The notes beneath the pieces are model-generated. The model made no database searches. It worked only from the letters and a program-made list of their open reading frames with translations, and was not told the DNA's origin. From NCBI GenBank assembly GCA_937625935.1, contig OW569353.1:548121-612120 (forward strand): DNA of 64,000 bases, read 5' to 3'. Numbering within the stretch: position 1 is the stretch's first letter; the number at the start of each line of letters is the position of its first letter. This document shows positions 3,514 through 63,210 of this stretch, piece after piece. Source of the stretch: Tetramitus jugosus. Lineage: Eukaryota; Protista; Heterolobosea. The translations under genes were made by a program, and so were the position numbers.

Positions 3514-5835
3514 TTACTGTGAAGTGGGTGCATTCATTTGCCTAAATGTGGCATCGACGATACCTGTCCTCGTCTCATAGACAAACAATCGCATGATACG
3601 ATTGAAGAAGGTGATTTCATTGGGATTTTCTAGGTATTCCTCACGATTCTCCAGTCCCGATATCTTGACAATACTTATCTCTGGCACCACTTTTCGAATA
3701 ATGTTCAAAACTTCAGTCTCTGATGGATAACTGTATCCGTGTTTGAGCTCTAATTGTGACACAACATCTGAGATGATGATGGCCACATTTTGCAATAATC
3801 CCATGACAGGGTTCTTCTTCTTCAAGTTTCGCTCCATCCAATCACTCAACTTGTCAAACACTTGCCTATGGTAGATCATTTGATAAATCATTTCCTCTTG
3901 ATCGATTCTGGATGGGAAGAACAAGTCACCCTTCAGTATTCCAAAATTGAAGATTGTGAGAACTTGCCCCAGTATATTACATGCTCTGACCTTGTCTCCA
4001 TTGCAATTGCCTTCAGCAATGACATCACAGATCCGGATCAGTGATGTCCACAATTGCTTCCAATCTGTCACAAATCGGATTCGGAATTTCTTTGCAAGAC
4101 ACAATATGGCATGTGTCGCTGAGAGAGCCTTACTGTACATTTCCATGGAGAAGTGATGGCGAGTCATGTGATGATTCAAGAATTGAATCAACAATTCAAA
4201 CACAATCTTTGCCAATGAACCATGGCCATCACATGATCGCACAGTGAATTGTCCCTTCTCTTTGAAGAATAGTGTAAAATCAAGCTTTACATTATTATCA
4301 AACATGAAGGATCGGAACACTTTCTTATCGACGAGGCACAGTATAATGATCAGGCAAAAATGAGAATAATACTGTGTCGATATGTCTTCGTTTGATGAGT
4401 TCTGAGTCGCTGTTATTTGTGTATTGTTCGCATTCTTCACATAATTATTAATATAGTGAGGTTCCTGGAACAAGATGGAGCAGTACTTTAGAAACTGTTG
4501 CAGAATGAGAGGACAACCCCTAACATTTCCACCTCTACCGCGCTCATCCAACCGATCCATCACATCAGCACTCGTCTCTCTTTCGATTCTTCGTTGATTG
4601 TCTTCATTCGCTGCAATACTCGCAAGAGATCGAGTCAACAATCCCACAAAATTCTCATTGACATGAATGAGCTCGTACAACATGAGAAGCATGGCACTCA
4701 CTTGTTTGACATCCTTTGGTTTTGCAGCTCCAGCACTAGCGCTACTCGTCGTTGTCGTCGCAGTCGCAGAAGAGAACAAACTGTTCCAAACATAGGTAAA
4801 AATCGATGCATTCGCTGCTACAGTCATCTCAAACGAACTTGTCCACACGCTCAAATATCTCGTAATCACATCACTAAACGCCATCAACACTGCAGGCTGC
4901 TCAATCTTCTTCAAATGCGCCAAATAAATATTCTCCTTCATACTCTCATACTTTCTATAATTGACTAGAATGCTGAGACAAACAAGCGCATTCTTCTTCA
5001 TCTTCATACTCGTCTGTTGTGACATGAGAACATGAACCAAACTGTCGTACACATCAACCAACATGAAATAATCAATCAACGCATTCTGATTCACATTCTC
5101 CTGACCCGTCAACAAAATGACAAACAGTGCCAGAGCCAACTGCTGCACCTTACTATTCTTCTCCTGCACAATACACTCACAACACTGAACAATCAACTTT
5201 TTAAAATAATCATCTGCATTCTGCAATCCACTCACCATATTCAAAATGTTCAGCACTGAAAAGGAAGAAGATGAACTACCACCACCACTAGAGCTACTAC
5301 CCATATTCGAACTTGAAAAATTCGAAGCCACAAATGAATTTCCACCTTTTCTAAACAATGACTGAAACAAGACACACAGAGTCAACAGTGCATTGATGCG
5401 TCTCGTATAAGACACATTGACCACATGTTTCAACAAGTTTAAAAACAGTGGATTCAGTATGCTTCTCTGCATGGACAACAATTCTTCTTCACTGGTCAAC
5501 TGGATGCAATCTTCGAGGTATTTTGTGTTGACTTTGAGCAGAAAAAGTTCATCCCAAAATTCAACATTTTCCACCCTGTGATGATTGTCGTTATCACCAT
5601 TTGATGATAATGATGAAGGTTTTTGAAAGATGGGTTGATTGTTGAACAATTGTTCATAGATGCTTACGAATTTTTCCTTGTGTGAGGAGGCACTGGGAGG
5701 TGAATCACCTGTTATGCTTGTGGTGGTTGACGACGCCGCGTTCGTGGAGTGATCCGAATGGTTACTGCTGTTACTCAACAGACCGAAAATCATGATTGTC
5801 GTTCGTTGGTTGGCTTTTTTTTTCTCGTTGAACAC
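3514..5835 (-). CDS. ARMH3: ARMH3/C10orf76 (DUF1741) armadillo-like helical protein
   Basis: FWDELFLLKVN, NQNALIDYFM, LVNYRKYE..NIY, IFNFGILKGDLFFP motifs; the ORF track starts at a non-ATG codon, so the true start is probably slightly downstream. Confidence 0.8.
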   Translation of the reverse strand: MFNEKKKANQRTTIMIFGLLSNSSNHSDHSTNAASSTTTSITGDSPPSASSHKEKFVSIYEQLFNNQPIFQKPSSLSSNGDNDNHHRVENVEFWDELFLLKVNTKYLEDCIQLTSEEELLSMQRSILNPLFLNLLKHVVNVSYTRRINALLTLCVLFQSLFRKGGNSFVASNFSSSNMGSSSSGGGSSSSSFSVLNILNMVSGLQNADDYFKKLIVQCCECIVQEKNSKVQQLALALFVILLTGQENVNQNALIDYFMLVDVYDSLVHVLMSQQTSMKMKKNALVCLSILVNYRKYESMKENIYLAHLKKIEQPAVLMAFSDVITRYLSVWTSSFEMTVAANASIFTYVWNSLFSSATATTTTSSASAGAAKPKDVKQVSAMLLMLYELIHVNENFVGLLTRSLASIAANEDNQRRIERETSADVMDRLDERGRGGNVRGCPLILQQFLKYCSILFQEPHYINNYVKNANNTQITATQNSSNEDISTQYYSHFCLIIILCLVDKKVFRSFMFDNNVKLDFTLFFKEKGQFTVRSCDGHGSLAKIVFELLIQFLNHHMTRHHFSMEMYSKALSATHAILCLAKKFRIRFVTDWKQLWTSLIRICDVIAEGNCNGDKVRACNILGQVLTIFNFGILKGDLFFPSRIDQEEMIYQMIYHRQVFDKLSDWMERNLKKKNPVMGLLQNVAIIISDVVSQLELKHGYSYPSETEVLNIIRKVVPEISIVKISGLENREEYLENPNEITFFNRIMRLFVYETRTGIVDATFRQMNAPTSQ

Positions 5836-54624: not shown

Positions 54625-54970
54625 TCGGGAGGTTGGGGTTTATGTCATAAGTCGAGACCCAACCCGAAGAAATTTTTCAGTACAACTTTTAATCATCTCA
54701 ACGAGCTCTACAGGATTAAAACTCGAAGAGAAGATCGCTTCCTACTGTAATTAACAGATTTTCTCTGCAACAGGATTAAAACTGCAACAGACTTTTATGA
54801 AAGATTTTTTCAGATTAACATTGGACTGTATGTTAAGAGAACTGTTCTTTTTTCAAATTTTAGACTAGAATTTTAGACCTCTTATATTCATTTGAAGCAT
54901 TAAGTCTGTTATTTCTGTCATTTTTTGTTGTTTTTTGGCAGATTGAGTTGCATTTCAGTTCAATGGATTT
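54625..54970. repeat. Subtelomeric unit, partial copy 1
   Basis: Diverged direct repeat of 55488-55860 (TATGTCATAAGTC.AGACCCAACCC, TTTTTCAGTACAACTTTTA, CAGGATTAAAACTGCAACAGAC); starts at a degenerate telomere tract. Confidence 0.85.
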
Positions 54971-55487: not shown

Positions 55488-56522
55488 TTTGAGTTTGGGT
55501 TTGGGATTTATGTCATAAGTCCAGACCCAACCCAAAGGACTTTTTCAGTACAACTTTTACTCATCTCAACGAGCTCTAACAGGATTTAACAGGATTAAAA
55601 CTCTATCGTCTCGAAGAGACGATCGCTCCCTGCTTTAATTAACAGATTTTAACTGCAACAGGATTAAAACTGCAACAGACTTTAACGACAGATTTTTTCA
55701 TCAAACCATGAGATTAGCACTGGACTGTATGATAAGAGAACAGTTTTTTTTCAGGTTTTAGACTGAAATTTTAGACCTCTTGTATTCATTTAAAGCATTA
55801 AATACGTTATTTCATGTTGTTTTTTCGGCTGATTGAATTGCATTTCAGTACTATGACTTTTGATTCACTTGAAATTCTCTTGACCTGAAGATTTTAACCA
55901 GTTTTAGAGATAATTTGGATACGATGGAGATATTTCGTTGTAGAATGAGATGTTTTCGGTAGAATAGGCTGATGAACGAGAGATTTCATTCTTGAAAGGA
56001 ATATTTTGACATATTGGACAGGCAGAATGAGATTTAAACTTGTCAGTGCATAAGATGAGTGCGGAGTTGCAAGTTCAGATCCAATCTTCATAAAACAAGA
56101 GTAACTCTTGCTTGCTGATAAGAATTCATACCTATGAACGTAAATGACTGTGAAATGTTGCAGAAAACACTATTTTGGAGTGAGATTGGCTCTTGAGAGA
56201 ATATATTTCTATTGTTCTGATTTCCTTGAGTGCAGAGTTGAATACCCAGACCCAACCCATCATAACTGAAGAGAAATAGAAATGACTACTCATTAAAGAT
56301 ATATTGACTCACTAAATTGCCTCCAATCCTTCCAGATTTTGAGCATTGAATGACAGAATTTCTGTTTTCGACAAAGAGTAGGGAGTGAATGTCAAAAGAT
56401 GGATATAGAAATGAACTGAGAGATTTTAGCTTCCATTAATCATGTTTGATCAGATTTTAGATGATAGATCGTTTCTATTTTGAATTTGGATGAAATTTTT
56501 GATTTTTGAGAAAGAAGTTGAC
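55488..56522. repeat. Subtelomeric ~1-kb unit, copy 2
   Basis: Its last ~300 bp are clearly similar to 62920-63210, with weaker collinear similarity upstream; flanked by GGGTTT tracts. Confidence 0.8.
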
Positions 56523-56541
56523 TTGGGTTTGGGTTTGGGTT
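56523..56541 (+). repeat. Short internal telomeric tract (former chromosome end / retroelement 3' junction)
   Basis: TTGGGTTTGGGTTTGGGTT preceded by the same telomere-adjacent sequence as the true telomere at 63211. Confidence 0.85.
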
Positions 56542-56545
56542 CAAA

Positions 56546-56873
56546 CACTCCACTATGGGGCGCGAGAGTGGCGAGTGAGATGTTGTTGTTGTTTGTTAGT
56601 TGTGGTATATTTACGTGCAACACAGGTATTCGGGCTGGTCGCAAATCTAGTGCGGTGCCTAAACATGAGCACTCTACACCACAACTTTATTATTTATACT
56701 AAAAGTGCAGGTCAACTTGGCTGCACAAAAGTCTTGAACCTTGGAAGATTGCAAATGCCCATTGGGCCGATAAAAATGGTCCGTAGGACCATTTTAATTG
56801 GCCGTTGGCGATTTGCACTGTAGTCGGAGCCGTACCCCGTACGGTTTATCCTGACTACGAATCTTATGGTTCA
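56546..56873 (-). ncRNA. Structured 3' UTR of the retroelement (four helical domains)
   Basis: Complementary pairs seen by eye: TGAACC/GGTTCA, AAGATT/AATCTT, AAAATGGTCC/GGACCATTTT, GTAGTC/GACTAC, CCGTAC/GTACGG, GTGCAG/CTGCAC, AGTTGTGGT/ACCACAACT, CACTC/GAGTG. Confidence 0.7.
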
Positions 56874-59800
56874 GTACCACTTGTAGTCCATGCTATCAAG
56901 TTTGCGTTTCTTGATGCGAGGTGCACTCTGCATTAACGTACAACCCTTTGTATCTCTCACTCTCTTAGATACAACGGTTGTATTCACGTTGCAAGAGTCC
57001 CATGTGGACTGTGAAGGAGTTGTTTTGTGTCGTTTGGCCATTGCCGCTTCGACAGCCTCCTTTTCCCTCAAGTACCTCTTATTTTGGGTCTTGGGTGGGT
57101 TTGGGCGCAGGTGCGTTGCTGACTTCGTCAGCATCACGCACCCGCGTGATGTTTTGCGAAGTCGCAATTGCAACTGGCGTCGAATTGTTGAATAACCACT
57201 TCCCCTTTCCGAAAATGATCGGATCAGTCGTTGTGCAGCAAATGAAGTACGCTGCCAACGTCGTTTGTGGTTACCAACAACAACGTCCATCAATGTTCTT
57301 GCCATTTTCTTCTTTTCTTCTTCGTTTGGCATTTGATCACATTGTTGCACCCAAGTGTTGAATTTGGTTTTGCATGCGTGCAGAACTTCCCTAATGTTGG
57401 GAAGTCTGACATTGCAAATGACCAATTCCTTTGGCAAGTCAATCTCATTGAAGAGAGAAATGGCATTTATCAATTGTCGATAATTGATGCCACTGCCAGA
57501 GTGTAACACTTTCCAAATTGGTGGAATTTTTGGTTTGTGTTGCAAGTCCAATTTTTGTTGGTACTTGATCACTCTGGCTTGCCAGTCAATTGATTTGCAG
57601 TATCGTTCAACGAGTGCAAAGTAATTGTTCTTTTTGAACATTCGTTGAACGAAATGGTGGTCATAACCTCTTCGGATTAACCGAGAGGCAAACAATGTTC
57701 GAATTGAATCGAATTGTTTGAAGTGATCAACAAGGCGAGCATATCTTACCAACTCACCTGTGATCAGACCTTTCCTTGCTGCAAATGAAGACGCTGACTT
57801 GTACATGGAGTACATGTACTTGTTCAATGGCTTCTGGTAGACATTGAAGTGAAAGCGCCATAATGGAACTGCAAAGTTCTCATAATACTTTTCCAATTGG
57901 ATGTGCAAATCCAGGAAAACATTATTGTCTGCTTTGCAGAGTTTCAAATCCGAACCATTGTACATGTTGACAATGGTAGGTATGCACTCTTTTGTGCAAG
58001 CAATGAACAAATCGTCAATGTACCTCACTGCAATGCAGTGGGATCTGTTGACTTTGGTCAAGTGTTGCAACTCATAAGCAAGTAGCACAAGGTTGGCTAA
58101 TTCAGGCGCACAATTTGTGCCCATTGGAAGGCCAATTACTTGTTTAAAAATGCTATTGTTGAGTTCCTCACATCTAATGTATGTGCAGGTTAACACAAAA
58201 TGCAATAACAATTTCATTGCACCAATTTCTTGACTTGTCCAAGTGTTTGGTTCAAGTTGTTGCATCATTTCAAAGATGTACTCCATATTTGTTTTGATGA
58301 CGTCATGTCTCAAATTGGTGTACAATGCAGTGAAATCATAGCTGTAGGTTTGCAGCTTTGGATGTACTGTGAATTCCCACGTTGCTCCATTCTGCAAGCA
58401 CCATTTGTTGAGAACCAGTTTCGCTTCATATGAAGATGAAACAATGGGCATTACTGGTAGTAAACCCTGGTCTCGTCTTTGCTGTAGTTGAGTGATCATT
58501 AGACGGAGTCTAATGCTGAGCAGTTTGGATGCTTCAGTGTTGACCCAACTATGGCTGGCGACAATTGGTCGACCTTGGAGTTTGTCTTTGTGCACTTTTG
58601 GCAACAAATAAAACTTGGGAATGGACAATTCATTGATATCCTCAATTTGTCTTGTTTTCCGTAGGTGTTCACCCATAGATGGGTGCAAATTTGAGATCTT
58701 ATCAATGCACCAGTGTGTGAGAATCTTGATTGTTGAGACTGTGTATCTTTTGTTCTCTCTTATGCTGTACACTGGGCTTTCAAGTTGTTTCTTACATTCT
58801 TCAATGTAATTGTCTTTGTGCCAGACAGCGGTGCCCAAGTTCTTGTCTGTGTCACAAATGATCCATTCTTCATTTGTGACGAGTCTCAATAGGGCCTCAT
58901 TGTCAATGCCGTTCAGGTTTTGAACAATTGGAGCATTGTGTCTTTTTCTCCATGCTTCTTGGATCAGAGCACGAGCCGACGAATGGAGGATGTCATTGCT
59001 GACGTCAAGTTTCTTTGTTAATTGCAAAAATGATGAAAAGTCAAGTTCTTGCATGATAAAAGGGTTAATTTTCATTGATGGAATGAACTTTAGGCCTTTG
59101 TTCAACACTTGTACATCTTTAGTCTTGATAGCAGTTGGTGTGAGGTTGAAAATGATGTTTGAACTTGCAGGAACATTGCTGTTGTGCGGTTCAATGGTTT
59201 CTCCCTCCAGCAAGCACTCTTGACGCGTGACGTTGTTTTTCTTCCTTGTTGTGCTGTTGGATGCTTGATATCTTGAAGAACCAGGCCGTGGGAGTTCATA
59301 ATGAAACTCCTTGTGTTTTGGTTCCTGTTGTATGCAGGAAACCATCCTTGTTCTGACAGGTGCGGAGTTTCTTGAAAAACTCCGATTGATCAAACAACCG
59401 TCCAAATGGTGATTTGGATGTCTCCTTGGCATCCTGGTGGATGGACAGCTCATGGATTGCTGATTTGGCTTGGAATCGGTGAAAAATTGGGCATGGATTC
59501 CCCTTTCTTTTGGACCGATTTTTTTCCTCTGCTCTTGGTGGGTTGGTTGGTTTTTTTTGGCTTGTGTTTTTTCCTGTTGTACTTTTTGACGGTCTTCCCT
59601 CATTGATAGAGACCTATTGAAGCTTTCTTTTGGAAAACTGACCACGCCATTGTGTTCCTTGAGGTCACTTGTAGGTGCATGGAGGTTTCTTTTGTTCATC
59701 AAGTGTGTGCTTGTGTTTATCAATTTTGACCTTCGTCCCTCATTCCACAGGGATGTAGGAGAAATATCTTTTGATGCTAATCGCACTGTTTTAGGTTCTA

Positions 59801-60569
59801 TCCATGTAGTACTTGATGATGTATCTGTTGTCTTTCTAGTAGATCCTCTAGTGCTTTGACTGTAGTCAATTTCTAGTTTTCTCCGATATGTTTGAGTCAA
59901 CAGCTCATTCAAAATAAATCGAAATTGCGTGTTCAATGCGCCATTAGATTCAGAAGGTACGAAAGCACCTAGAATGTGTGTAAATGGCATTAATGACTTC
60001 ATTCCTTGTGTGCTGTTTCGATTGGGAAATGAAAAACTCCGATCGAGAATACAACCAATGAGGAAGTTATTTTCATGATTTTTCTTGTCATTATTAGTTA
60101 TATACTGTTTAGTAGAACACCTTTCCAGTTGGAATGACGGTTTTACCTGATGTCCTTGATGGATGGTGATCCATGATAGATTTTTTTGAGTTCCAGGACT
60201 CAACCATTCATTCAAAACATGAATTTTCTTCATTTTGTTTTGAGTTTTCATTATATCATGGTGATAAGTATTGTTAACAGTGGAATAACGAGATTTGTCT
60301 TTGTAATTCCTATCTTTCATTTGTTCGTTAAAATGACAGTCAATTAAATGTCTCAGGCCAAAAAAAAGGTTTTTTTTGGGCCTAACATTTGTGTTCGAAT
60401 GAAATTTTTCAAGGGGATTTCTTTGCGCTTGTTGTAAGCGTTGCTCCTTCACCTTGGCAGACCTGTATTCAAATTGGTTCTGGAGACCAATAACCACCAC
60501 AGGTTGGTGGTGTTTGATGGGAACGAGATGGGAATAGTGGGCAATGGAGCAAATTTTGTCCCATTTCAC
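56871..60569 (-). CDS. Retroelement ORF2: Penelope-like reverse transcriptase (frame open up to 60692; no ATG at its 5' end)
   Basis: VLNKGLKFIP, DTDKNLG, PKFYLLPKVHK...RPIVAS, SYDFTALYTNL, QVIGLPMGTNCAPELANL, RYIDDLF, FLDLHI, VYQKP; basic C-terminus (PRIKKRKL). Confidence 0.92.
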   Translation of the reverse strand: MKWDKICSIAHYSHLVPIKHHQPVVVIGLQNQFEYRSAKVKEQRLQQAQRNPLEKFHSNTNVRPKKNLFFGLRHLIDCHFNEQMKDRNYKDKSRYSTVNNTYHHDIMKTQNKMKKIHVLNEWLSPGTQKNLSWITIHQGHQVKPSFQLERCSTKQYITNNDKKNHENNFLIGCILDRSFSFPNRNSTQGMKSLMPFTHILGAFVPSESNGALNTQFRFILNELLTQTYRRKLEIDYSQSTRGSTRKTTDTSSSTTWIEPKTVRLASKDISPTSLWNEGRRSKLINTSTHLMNKRNLHAPTSDLKEHNGVVSFPKESFNRSLSMREDRQKVQQEKTQAKKNQPTHQEQRKKIGPKERGIHAQFFTDSKPNQQSMSCPSTRMPRRHPNHHLDGCLINRSFSRNSAPVRTRMVSCIQQEPKHKEFHYELPRPGSSRYQASNSTTRKKNNVTRQECLLEGETIEPHNSNVPASSNIIFNLTPTAIKTKDVQVLNKGLKFIPSMKINPFIMQELDFSSFLQLTKKLDVSNDILHSSARALIQEAWRKRHNAPIVQNLNGIDNEALLRLVTNEEWIICDTDKNLGTAVWHKDNYIEECKKQLESPVYSIRENKRYTVSTIKILTHWCIDKISNLHPSMGEHLRKTRQIEDINELSIPKFYLLPKVHKDKLQGRPIVASHSWVNTEASKLLSIRLRLMITQLQQRRDQGLLPVMPIVSSSYEAKLVLNKWCLQNGATWEFTVHPKLQTYSYDFTALYTNLRHDVIKTNMEYIFEMMQQLEPNTWTSQEIGAMKLLLHFVLTCTYIRCEELNNSIFKQVIGLPMGTNCAPELANLVLLAYELQHLTKVNRSHCIAVRYIDDLFIACTKECIPTIVNMYNGSDLKLCKADNNVFLDLHIQLEKYYENFAVPLWRFHFNVYQKPLNKYMYSMYKSASSFAARKGLITGELVRYARLVDHFKQFDSIRTLFASRLIRRGYDHHFVQRMFKKNNYFALVERYCKSIDWQARVIKYQQKLDLQHKPKIPPIWKVLHSGSGINYRQLINAISLFNEIDLPKELVICNVRLPNIREVLHACKTKFNTWVQQCDQMPNEEEKKKMARTLMDVVVGNHKRRWQRTSFAAQRLIRSFSERGSGYSTIRRQLQLRLRKTSRGCVMLTKSATHLRPNPPKTQNKRYLREKEAVEAAMAKRHKTTPSQSTWDSCNVNTTVVSKRVRDTKGCTLMQSAPRIKKRKLDSMDYKWY

Positions 60570-60598
60570 CTTCTTCGTTCCTTTTTGTGTAGAATCAT

Positions 60599-61528
60599 TT
60601 AGTTCCTTTGTTTTGACCCTCGTCTTGACTTTCCTCGTGGTCTGCGAGGGGAGGATGGTTTGCGAGAGGGTTTTTGTTCTTTTTTTCGACCCCTACTGTT
60701 GCTAGGTGATCTTCTGGTCTTAGAGCGACCTCTTTTGGGAGATTTGGATCTCGGTTGGTTCTTTTGTTGTTTTCCTTTCGAAGGAGAACGACTATATGCT
60801 CTTTGGGTCTTTGAACGACCGCGAGATTTAGAACGATTTGAGCGAGCACGAGGTTTGGAATTGTCACGTCTTGGTCGTGATTTGGACCTTGCTCTTGATT
60901 GTTTACCAGCTTGAGCACTAATGCTGATTCTCCAATATGGAGCAGGTTTTGCTGGTACTTGGTTTTCTCCTTCATCGCTCATTGCGTTTTGTTGCTGTTG
61001 GAGAGCAATAATTCTTGTATGTTCTCTTTTTTCCTCTTGTCGTTTTTTGAGTCTTGTGTTCAATTTGTAAGACTGTACTTGAGTGTTCATCTTATTGATG
61101 TACTTGTCAACAGTGGTAACAAATGGACCTGTTCTATGCAATTGTAGTTCTTGTGTAGCTTCAGCAAGTGGTGCATCAGTATTTTTTGTCATTTGGTTCT
61201 TGCAATTGTTAATGAGGTCAGCGACATGTTCTTCAGCAGTCTTGATATATGCATTGGTCAATTGTGTAATGCTGTGATTGAATTTTTCAGACATTTCTTT
61301 ATCAGTAGAGACTGTGGCAGTGGAAGCAATGGTGAGCCATAAGTGTTCTAGCCTTCCTTGGAGGATGGCTGTCAGTTGCATGTTATTTTGCAAGTATTGT
61401 TGTTGCTTCTTCTCGGCAGTGATGGCTTTGCCAATGTTTGTCTTATACTTGTTGATGGCAGATGAGATAATCTTTTCCAGAATAGGATTATTCATTGCTA
61501 CAAGTGACTCTGCTGATGATTGACTCAT
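60599..61528 (-). CDS. Retroelement ORF1: helical/coiled-coil N-terminus plus Arg/Ser/Lys-rich basic tail (309 aa)
   Basis: First ATG at 61528; about 100-aa tail of RSKSR/RSPSK repeats; lies directly 5' of and overlaps the RT frame. Confidence 0.8.
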   Translation of the reverse strand: MSQSSAESLVAMNNPILEKIISSAINKYKTNIGKAITAEKKQQQYLQNNMQLTAILQGRLEHLWLTIASTATVSTDKEMSEKFNHSITQLTNAYIKTAEEHVADLINNCKNQMTKNTDAPLAEATQELQLHRTGPFVTTVDKYINKMNTQVQSYKLNTRLKKRQEEKREHTRIIALQQQQNAMSDEGENQVPAKPAPYWRISISAQAGKQSRARSKSRPRRDNSKPRARSNRSKSRGRSKTQRAYSRSPSKGKQQKNQPRSKSPKRGRSKTRRSPSNSRGRKKEQKPSRKPSSPRRPRGKSRRGSKQRN

Positions 61529-61574
61529 GGTTTGTGAGGAGTTAATGATATTAGTAATGTAAACCACTCAAATA

Positions 61575-62148
61575 GGTTTGGGTTCAAACACTCCACTATG
61601 GGGCGCGAGAGTGGCGAGTGAGATGTTGTTGTTGTTTGTTAGTTGTGGTATATTTACGTGCAACACAGGTATTCGGGCTGGTCGCAAATCTAGTGCGGTG
61701 CCTAAACATGAGCACTCTACACCACAACTTTATTATTTATACTAAAAGTGCAGGTCAACTTGGCTGCACAAAAGTCTTGAACCTTGGAAGATTGCAAATG
61801 CCCATTGGGCCGATAAAAATGGTCCGTAGGACCATTTTAATTGGCCGTTGGCGATTTGCACTGTAGTCGGAGCCGTACCCCGTACGGTTTATCCTGACTA
61901 CGAATCTTATGGTTCAGTACCACTTGTAGTCCATGCTATCAAGTTTGCGTTTCTTGATGCGAGGTGCACTCTGCATTAACGTACAACCCTTTGTATCTCT
62001 CACTCTCTTAGATACAACGGTTGTATTCACGTTGCAAGAGTCCCATGTGGACTGTGAAGGAGTTGTTTTGTGTCGTTTGGCCATTGCCGCTTCGACAGCC
62101 TCCTTTTCCCTCAAGTACCTCTTATTTTGGGTCTTGGGTGGGTTTGGG
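61575..62148 (-). mobile_element. 5'-truncated second copy of the element (pseudo-LTR), 574 bp, direct repeat of 56532-57105
   Basis: No mismatches seen by eye at a constant offset of 5,043 bp; includes the 3' UTR and the end of ORF2. Confidence 0.93.
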
Positions 62149-62220
62149 TTTGGGTTTGGGTTTGGGTTTGGGTTTGGGTTTGGGTTTGGGTTTGGGTTTG
62201 GGTTGGGTTTGGGTTTGGGG
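62140..62220 (+). repeat. Internal telomeric tract capping the truncated element copy
   Basis: About 13 GGGTTT units starting exactly where homology to the full copy ends. Confidence 0.93.
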
Positions 62221-63210
62221 ATACATCCTGGATTCCCCAACCTAAGGAAACGATTTCCTTATATGGTAATTTTTTTTTTGAGATTTTTTATTGCTCTAAG
62301 AGCTTCAGCTGGTTGAGACGAAGAGATTGGCATTGTTTTCAACTCGATTTGAGCTTTATCGGCTCGTAGAGCCGATATATCTGTGCTGTATTTGACATAT
62401 TTTTATCGGCAACAGTGTTAAAACTGCAACAGATTTCAGTCGATTTTGATCCTGTACTGGAGTTAAGACATTCGATTGAGACTTGATTTCTTTAGTTTGG
62501 ATCAGGATATTGAGACAGTATTTGATCATTTTTAACATGATTTTCTTCCAACTATAGTTTTTGCCTCAGTTTTTGAGTACCTGATTTTTCAGAATTTTTG
62601 ACAGACTTGATTTAGTGTTTTTCTGGAGAGAATAGACAGATTTTATTAAATAATCACTGTAGAATCAGATGTTTTATCTAGTAATGAGACTTTTCTACGT
62701 AAAATCCTGTAAGACAGTGAAATATTGAAGTTTCAAATTTGAATCGAGTTTATAGTTGAAACGCCAAACTCAACCCGTCAGAAATCCAGAGTACTAGCTT
62801 TTTCTGAATGAAAATTCATATTTATGAATGTGATAGACTGAGAGTCTTGGAAAAAATTCTTCTTCTGAGATAGATCGGCTCTGACCGAATGAGGGCTCGG
62901 ATTTTGTCGTTTTCGTGCATGCAGAGTTGAATACCCAGACCCAACCCGACATAACTGAAGAGAAAAAGGAATGATTACTCATAAAACGTATATTTACTCC
63001 CTAACTTGCCTCAAATTCTTCCAGATGTTGAGCATTGGACGAGAGAATTTCTGTTTTCGACAAAGAGTAAGGAGTGAATGTCAAGAGATGGATATAGAAA
63101 TGGACTGAGTGATTTGAACTTTCATTAATCTTGTTTGATCAGATTTTAGATGGCAGATCGATTCTATTTTGAATTTGGATGAAGTTTTTGATTTTTGAGA
63201 AGAAAGTTGA
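62221..63210. repeat. Subtelomeric ~1-kb unit, copy 3 (telomere-adjacent)
   Basis: Shares AAAACTGCAACAGA, TGTAGAAT.AGATGTTTT, GCAGAGTTGAATACCCAGACCCAACCC and the final ~300 bp with 55488-56522. Confidence 0.8.

Follow-up and report, generated by a model that had tools for sequence, protein, structure and literature searches.

How was the retroelement at this chromosome end joined to it, and do the telomeric bases at its 3′ terminus belong to the element or to the chromosome? The DNA analysed, here called the window, is a stretch of 64,000 nt at the right end of contig C10, in a genome of 26 Mb and 56 contigs. The sequence points to a heterolobosean-like protist as host, whose telomeres are (TTTGGG)n and which has a telomerase gene. 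A histidine ammonia-lyase gene within the window has its closest matches in Acrasis (70%) and Naegleria (63%), and TTTGGG is the candidate telomere repeat of Naegleria (PMC3622300). The host TERT gene lies on another contig (L063, C31:284128–284511), where a Telomerase_RBD match of 137.6 bits falls within a 1074-aa open frame. The features of the window and the 3′ junctions of the element copies are collected in Table 1.

Table 1. Features of the window, followed by the 3′ junctions scored across the genome with their flank and telomeric tract length.
Feature	Position	Strand	Description
~1-kb subtelomeric unit proximal to the full copy	up to 56522		
Telomere G-strand remnant beneath the full copy	56523..56531	+	19-nt in-phase tract follows the boundary gttgac
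Full-length element	56532..61574	−	5,043 nt including the tail
Structured 3′ UTR	56532..56873	−	342 nt, z = −5.9; includes the conserved AATAAAGT block
Telomere-complementary tail	56532..56541	−	10 nt, sense AACCCAAACC, plus strand GGTTTGGGTT; 3′ terminus of the full copy
Spacer	56542..56545	−	4 nt, sense TTTG (plus CAAA); between hairpin and tail
Sub-terminal inverted repeat	56546..56577	−	CACTC/GAGTG outer stem, conserved CCCCAT-containing loop
ORF2	56871..60569	−	1232 aa, Penelope-like RT; DKN at residue 575, YIDD at 850
ORF1	60599..61567	−	ATG at 61528; C-terminal part basic, Ser/Arg/Lys-rich
Second tail copy	61575..61584	−	10 nt, GGTTTGGGTT; abuts the 5′ end of the full copy, without extra telomere repeats
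5′-truncated distal copy	61585..62142	−	element positions ~4470–5033; 100% identical to the full copy
Telomere repeats	62143..62220	+	~78 nt, distal to the 5′-truncated copy
Subtelomeric unit	62221..63210		~1 kb; related to 55501–56522; terminal at several chromosome ends
Terminal (TTTGGG)n telomere array	63211..64000	+	790 nt
Junction, window copy 2			non-telomeric flank, 10 nt
Junction, C7			non-telomeric flank, 10 nt
Junction, C9L-b			non-telomeric flank, 11 nt, GGGTA before it; within a 16-nt telomere-like stretch
Junction, C50			non-telomeric flank, 12 nt
Junction, C17			non-telomeric flank, 10-nt variant (GGGTTGGGTT)
Junction, C22			non-telomeric flank, decayed 11-nt version
Junction, C3-B			subtelomere boundary, 7 nt
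Junction, window copy 1			subtelomere boundary, 19 nt
Junction, C48			subtelomere boundary, 19 nt
Junction, C9L-a			subtelomere boundary, 26 nt
Junction, C3-A			truncated element (capped), 43 nt

The reverse transcriptase (RT) of the element is of the Penelope type. ORF2 matches the generic RVT_1 family of Pfam weakly, its homologues carry DUF8422 and HTH_animal, and a DKN motif accompanies the RT motifs; DKN, RT and thumb are typical features of Penelope-like elements (PMC13159263). The named homologues are fungal RTs (Puccinia, Phenoliferia and Beauveria, 25–27% identity), some of them telomere-adjacent, and at the Puccinia RT locus a (CCCTAA)n tract comes next. A PDB sequence search with the element RT returned a marginal retron match alone, with no similarity to TERT. 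Pfam detected no GIY-YIG or other endonuclease domain in ORF1 or ORF2, as in elements of the Athena/Coprina type; the N-terminal 520 aa and C-terminal 176 aa of ORF2 match no Pfam family even at E ≤ 10, and a very divergent domain is conceivable there. ORF1 had no match in Pfam, and a search for contigs encoding its product gave no record. Directly upstream of the full copy comes the 5′-truncated one, in head-to-tail order, which is the partial tandem (pseudo-LTR) arrangement of Penelope-like elements. Telomere-specific non-LTR elements (HeT-A/TART, SART/TRAS) do not match in kind, as there is neither an endonuclease domain nor poly(A) and the RT homologues are Penelope-type. From the DKN/YIDD-containing RT, its Penelope-type homologues and the lack of a detected endonuclease, we therefore classify the element as an endonuclease-deficient Penelope-like element. 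The literature searched reports no Penelope-like element from the heterolobosean lineage.

A genome-wide search with the element 3′ end gave 13 matches. Of the copies, at least nine are found within ~10 kb of contig ends that bear a telomere, each with its 3′ end centromere-ward, and truncated 5′ ends carry telomere repeats, as is seen in Athena- and Coprina-type elements; the exceptions to terminal location are old internal relics at C7 and C50 and an inverted fragment at C29. The full-length copy in the window is the only one in the genome, so its 5′ end at 61574 cannot be cross-checked against another. Near-identical copies (99.5–100%) are truncated at element positions 2560, 2834, 3264 and 4470, and an older 91% copy at position 3660. 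The five truncation points and the differing flanks point to retrotransposition events that were independent of one another. The element has apparently been active recently, with copies of 99.5–100% identity on four chromosome ends.

Both copies in the window were said by the initial annotation to share one junction, and the 20-mer GGTTTGGGTTCAAACACTCC does have just two exact occurrences in the window, at 56532 and 61575, against 0.00 expected from shuffles. The second of these was also correctly placed against the 5′ end of the full copy: it neighbours base 61574, with the ORF1 ATG ~46 nt inside. The 3′ junctions of all copies, a comparison that the initial annotation had called for, were measured as the perfect in-phase telomeric tract before the first element base. 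Eleven were scorable, and RT fragments near the contig ends of C49, C30, C35 and C12 were left out of the survey. Beside non-telomeric DNA, four junctions have a tract of 10–12 nt and one has a 10-nt variant; at two others the tract is longer or decayed. Beside telomere remnants it measures 7, 19, 19, 26 and 43 nt, perfectly in phase up to the first element base in every case. The survey thus yielded a short tract of fixed register at non-telomeric flanks and in-phase tracts at telomere remnants.

The cluster at 10–12 nt, its fixed register and the unrelated non-telomeric flanks indicate that AACCCAAACC(C) is copied from the template and that copying starts there. The same cluster takes in the head-to-tail junction at 61575, the point at which the cDNA of the previous copy stops. 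Of the telomere-flanked junctions, the four that are informative are all perfectly in phase, an outcome with a chance of 1/6 each, or ~(1/6)^4 overall, under blunt joining. Extension therefore began with the G-strand end paired to the tail. The short tract at C3-B fits pairing with part of the tail, which is not always fully represented, and C17 and C9L-b hold variant repeats that the tail alone cannot template. The tail is encoded by the element, its junctions with telomere remnants are in phase, and the orientation and location of the element are constant. The earlier proposal that about 10 nt of telomere complement form part of the transcript and anneal to the G-rich 3′ overhang gains support, at the level of sequence, from both the tract lengths beside non-telomeric DNA and the in-phase junctions.

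What kind of end received the element can be read from the flanks. The flank at 56523 had been likened to that of the real telomere, and positions 56088–56521 match 62778–63210 at 81% over 438 nt; both flanks end with gttgac/gttgat and continue as TTGGGTTT. On the plus strand, 56523–56541 is a perfect in-phase 19-nt telomeric tract whose end is overlapped by the tail at 56532–56541, and because the tract is in phase, the boundary between remnant and templated tail within 56523..56541 is not resolvable. The idea that the element was added to a telomere worn down to about three repeats therefore holds as regards a short telomere, but ~3 repeats is an upper bound for copy 1. Telomeres at the contig ends of this genome at present measure 650–900 bp, and the additions occurred on no more than 43 nt, so the element uses critically short telomeres or broken ends. 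The targets are telomeres of at most ~7 repeats, plus broken ends.

At many chromosome ends, the last unique sequence ahead of the telomere is the ~1-kb subtelomeric unit, which is non-coding. Its copies in the window lie at 55501–56522 and 62221–63210, with a partial one at 54633–54965, and others are present at L050, L052, L054, L055 and L047. It always terminates in gttgac/TTGGG and is itself preceded by short telomere tracts, which gives the chromosome ends their layering of tract, unit, tract and element.

We read these data, with a probability of about 0.8, as an endonuclease-deficient Penelope-like element at chromosome ends whose 10–11-nt telomere-complementary tail primes copying onto very short telomeres or breaks. 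At or beside its 3′ end, 4 nt past a small hairpin, the template RNA would carry AACCCAAACC(C), 10–11 nt complementary to the telomere; a template with a defined priming tail would end in ...GUUUGAACCCAAACC(C), and the RNA probably stops physically at the tail, as the junction sequences suggest. The G-strand 3′ end of a critically short telomere would base-pair with this tail, and a broken non-telomeric 3′ end could be used without pairing. The element RT would then extend the chromosome end along the RNA. Since it is the G-strand end that would be extended, the antisense strand continues the G-strand and the 3′ end of the element faces the centromere. The cDNA would often be 5′-truncated, after which host telomerase would cap it with new repeats; that telomerase does the capping is presumed from the repeats on truncated ends. 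This mechanism is already known, and the element represents it in a new group member. Deprotected telomeres or double-strand breaks can serve endonuclease-deficient Penelope-like elements as priming sites, after which telomerase caps the truncated 5′ end with telomere repeats (PMC3846280, PMC13159263), and a passage of PMC8557442 (citing Gladyshev & Arkhipova 2007 and Arkhipova et al. 2017) describes Athena and Coprina as attaching to G-rich overhangs via reverse-complement telomeric repeats.

Two other explanations of the shared junction were weighed. If the RNA ended in ...GTTTG and GGTTTGGGTT had been added earlier by telomerase, the bases would not be encoded by the element. The host does have a TERT, the variant repeats (GGGTTGGG, GGGTAGGG) at C17 and C9L-b look telomerase-made, and tract lengths range from 7 to 43 nt overall; however, the lengths cluster at 10–12 nt with the same starting register beside independent non-telomeric flanks, the full-length 5′ end is followed by a junction of exactly 10 nt, and the contigs of a relative also run into AAACCCAA as shared sequence, which together make an earlier telomerase product highly implausible. 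Inheritance of one junction through subtelomeric recombination or segmental duplication is extremely improbable. It would account for a 574-nt fragment that has an identical truncation point at C10 and C3, and units of ~1 kb are common to the subtelomeres of several chromosome ends, yet flanks and tract lengths differ among the copies, at least five truncation points are present, and extended flank identity across all copies was not seen. The two 574-nt fragments are themselves joined differently downstream, one to a 10-nt tail and the other to a 43-nt tract.

A closer relative of our reading concerns where the template ends. The RNA could read through the tail into the repeats and subtelomere, with the G-strand pairing to an internal CCCAAA and the hairpin fixing the start of the RT, as in telomerase RNA. 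The source copy, the full-length one, is indeed followed by 19 nt of repeat and not by 10; this C-strand tract then gives way to subtelomere. No hammerhead or other processing motif that would form an end was found, and the layout of hairpin, spacer and tail is conserved in a distant relative. Against this, junctions with non-telomeric DNA, including that at 61575, carry 10–12 nt and never downstream sequence, which is simplest if the template ends there, and we consider an internal template decidedly unlikely. Pairing through a terminal tail thus remains the preferred reading.

The sense end of the element has the anatomy initially described, CACTC-GC-CACT, a 12-nt loop, AGTG-GAGTG, TTTG and the tail, with coordinates verified by direct reading. 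Of the terminal hairpin proposed there, the inverted repeat stands but its statistical distinction does not: the last 69 nt of the element have a folding energy of −10.3 kcal/mol (z = −1.67), a value reached by 12 of 200 shuffles. ViennaRNA favours a slightly different register from that first described, alternative registers arising from the repetition of CACT(C). The hairpin can be folded in most family variants, which keep the CACTC/GAGTG pairing and the CCCCAT loop, and covariation analysis gave no convincing compensatory change among them. In a relative with 33% protein identity (P0002), a 7-bp hairpin is followed by GC and then AAACCCAA, as seen in two independent contigs that end there. 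This relative therefore shares the short reverse-complement telomeric stretch, 10–12 nt of AACCCAAACC(C) in our element, that characterizes Athena- and Coprina-type 3′ ends. Its hairpin is unrelated in sequence and the layout is alike, so that architecture rather than folding energy backs the hairpin, which presumably helps the RT to recognise or position the 3′ end.

Every retrotransposed copy continues beyond the AATAAAGT block and keeps the 130 nt downstream of AATAAA. The template RNA is therefore not the form polyadenylated at this signal, and AATAAA may serve a shorter mRNA form. The AATAAAGT block and a GATTTG(C/T)GACCAGCC block (56660–56700 and 56620–56640, minus strand) are common to a relative of 43% protein identity (assembly GCA_037189345.1; L056:2900–2990).

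Hammerhead ribozymes are a hallmark of Penelope-like elements (PMC4209133). A pattern script for the canonical core, CUGANGA...GAAA with helix II, found none on either strand of the element, and ribozyme and processing-motif searches revealed no other 3′-end-forming signal in it. The same script recovers canonical type I hammerheads in the two distant relatives P0003 and P0005 (loci L060:4417–4470 and L062:263–310). Rfam scans of the element and its relatives returned no ribozyme, a negative that carries no weight because the scan also missed the hammerheads of L060 and L062. A heterolobosean lineage of telomere-attaching Penelope-like elements might have dispensed with the hammerhead, its conserved hairpin, short spacer and ~1.5 repeats both setting the RT start and pairing with the chromosome end, a minimal telomerase-RNA-like layout within a protein-coding RNA. 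There might then be two RNA forms, a longer template with the tail and an mRNA whose poly(A) is added at the AATAAAGT block. We offer this scenario tentatively and regard it as rather unlikely. How a template 3′ end would form without a hammerhead matters for the possible origin of telomerase-like priming in such elements. Penelope-like RTs are the sister group of TERT (PMC8557442).

The likeness to a telomerase RNA template that had been pointed out holds in part. About 1.5 C-strand repeats that would pair with a G-strand 3′ end lie beside a helix, as proposed, but reiterated copying does not apply. The element RT would copy the whole 5-kb RNA once, the helix cannot be a template boundary, and the host has a TERT of its own. 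A reiterated short template, a template boundary element and a non-coding RNA, which define telomerase RNA, are all lacking here, as the tail forms the 3′ tip of a coding RNA 5 kb long.

Among described elements, the Coprina clade (fungi, diatoms and Selaginella) is comparable in its telomeric location, a 3′ end at C-strand repeats (Puccinia), the lack of an endonuclease and the DKN/RT/thumb layout; it likewise has partial tandem copies and 5′ truncations that end in a telomere-repeat cap. The closest named homologues by identity are fungal RTs, and the clade is likened here on that basis. Coprina elements typically have one ORF (two in Coprina-1_Alen, PMC13159263), whereas this element has two, lacks a canonical hammerhead, carries a tail complementary to TTTGGG in a single run of ~1.5 repeats, and resides in a heterolobosean-like host. 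Athena and the Terminons of bdelloid rotifers are likewise endonuclease-deficient Penelope-like elements with ORF1 and an RT ORF, short reverse-complement telomeric repeats at the 3′ end, attachment to overhangs or breaks, and 5′ truncation with capping (PMC8557442, PMC3846280, PMC5537684). Compared by description, Athena differs in being rotifer-specific and in having hammerhead motifs beside the repeats. Drosophila HeT-A/TART/TAHRE are also arrayed head-to-tail at chromosome ends, their 3′ ends centromere-ward, and are added to chromosome 3′ ends. They are, however, LINE-type non-LTR elements with poly(A) tails and no telomere-complementary tail, in a host without telomerase. The present locus offers a clean case of end-targeted retrotransposition in a small (26 Mb), telomere-to-telomere-like assembly, and from its series of junctions it is unusually clear that the element encodes the telomere-complementary tip and uses it by base-pairing.

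Further matches and relics were noted in the genome survey. The junction 13-mer has 11 exact matches genome-wide, of which 10 are genuine; that at C29:163919 was rejected as a copy, being a chance match. The match at C9R lacks the final ~40 nt and is without a telomeric junction. The C7 and C50 copies are old internal relics. On C29, a fragment ~2 kb from the right telomere (L066:1182–2083) is 83% identical, inverted relative to the other terminal copies and without a 3′ end; it is probably a rearranged relic. At C50 (L053:5741–5830, compared with L045:6019–6093), ATT comes after the tail and leads into part of a host-gene paralogue; this part starts with TGAGTAG, a start that mimics the 5′ end of the element (TATTTGAGTGG). 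A shared element 5′ end (ATTTGAGT) at this junction was considered and rejected, as the sequence is mostly host-gene paralogue, and the arrangement may reflect microhomology-mediated deletion of a former tandem copy. A pattern scan of metagenomes for the element 3′ end found nothing; in the 80 distant metagenomic RT loci surveyed, the contigs are short and rarely reach 3′ ends.

Several smaller features of the sequence were also recorded. Truncation point 4470 is shared by C10 and C3 in different contexts (~62136–62148, equivalent to ~57099–57111; L044:657–670). It lies at a telomere-like antisense stretch, TTTTGGGTCTTGGGT, and looks like a recurrent stop-and-cap site. The spacer and tail (56533–56546, minus strand) can fold on themselves as GUUUG, a 4-nt loop and CAAAC, a mini-hairpin that would mask the tail and that RNAalifold picked as conserved. 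A variant 3′ end on C8 (L055:3732–3790) has ACCCAAACCC directly after CCCCATAGTT, without the AGTGTTTGA segment. In the terminal array, an irregular G-rich patch of GGGGT/GGGGGT runs at 63866–63918 breaks the regular repeats and may represent variant repeats or long-read error.
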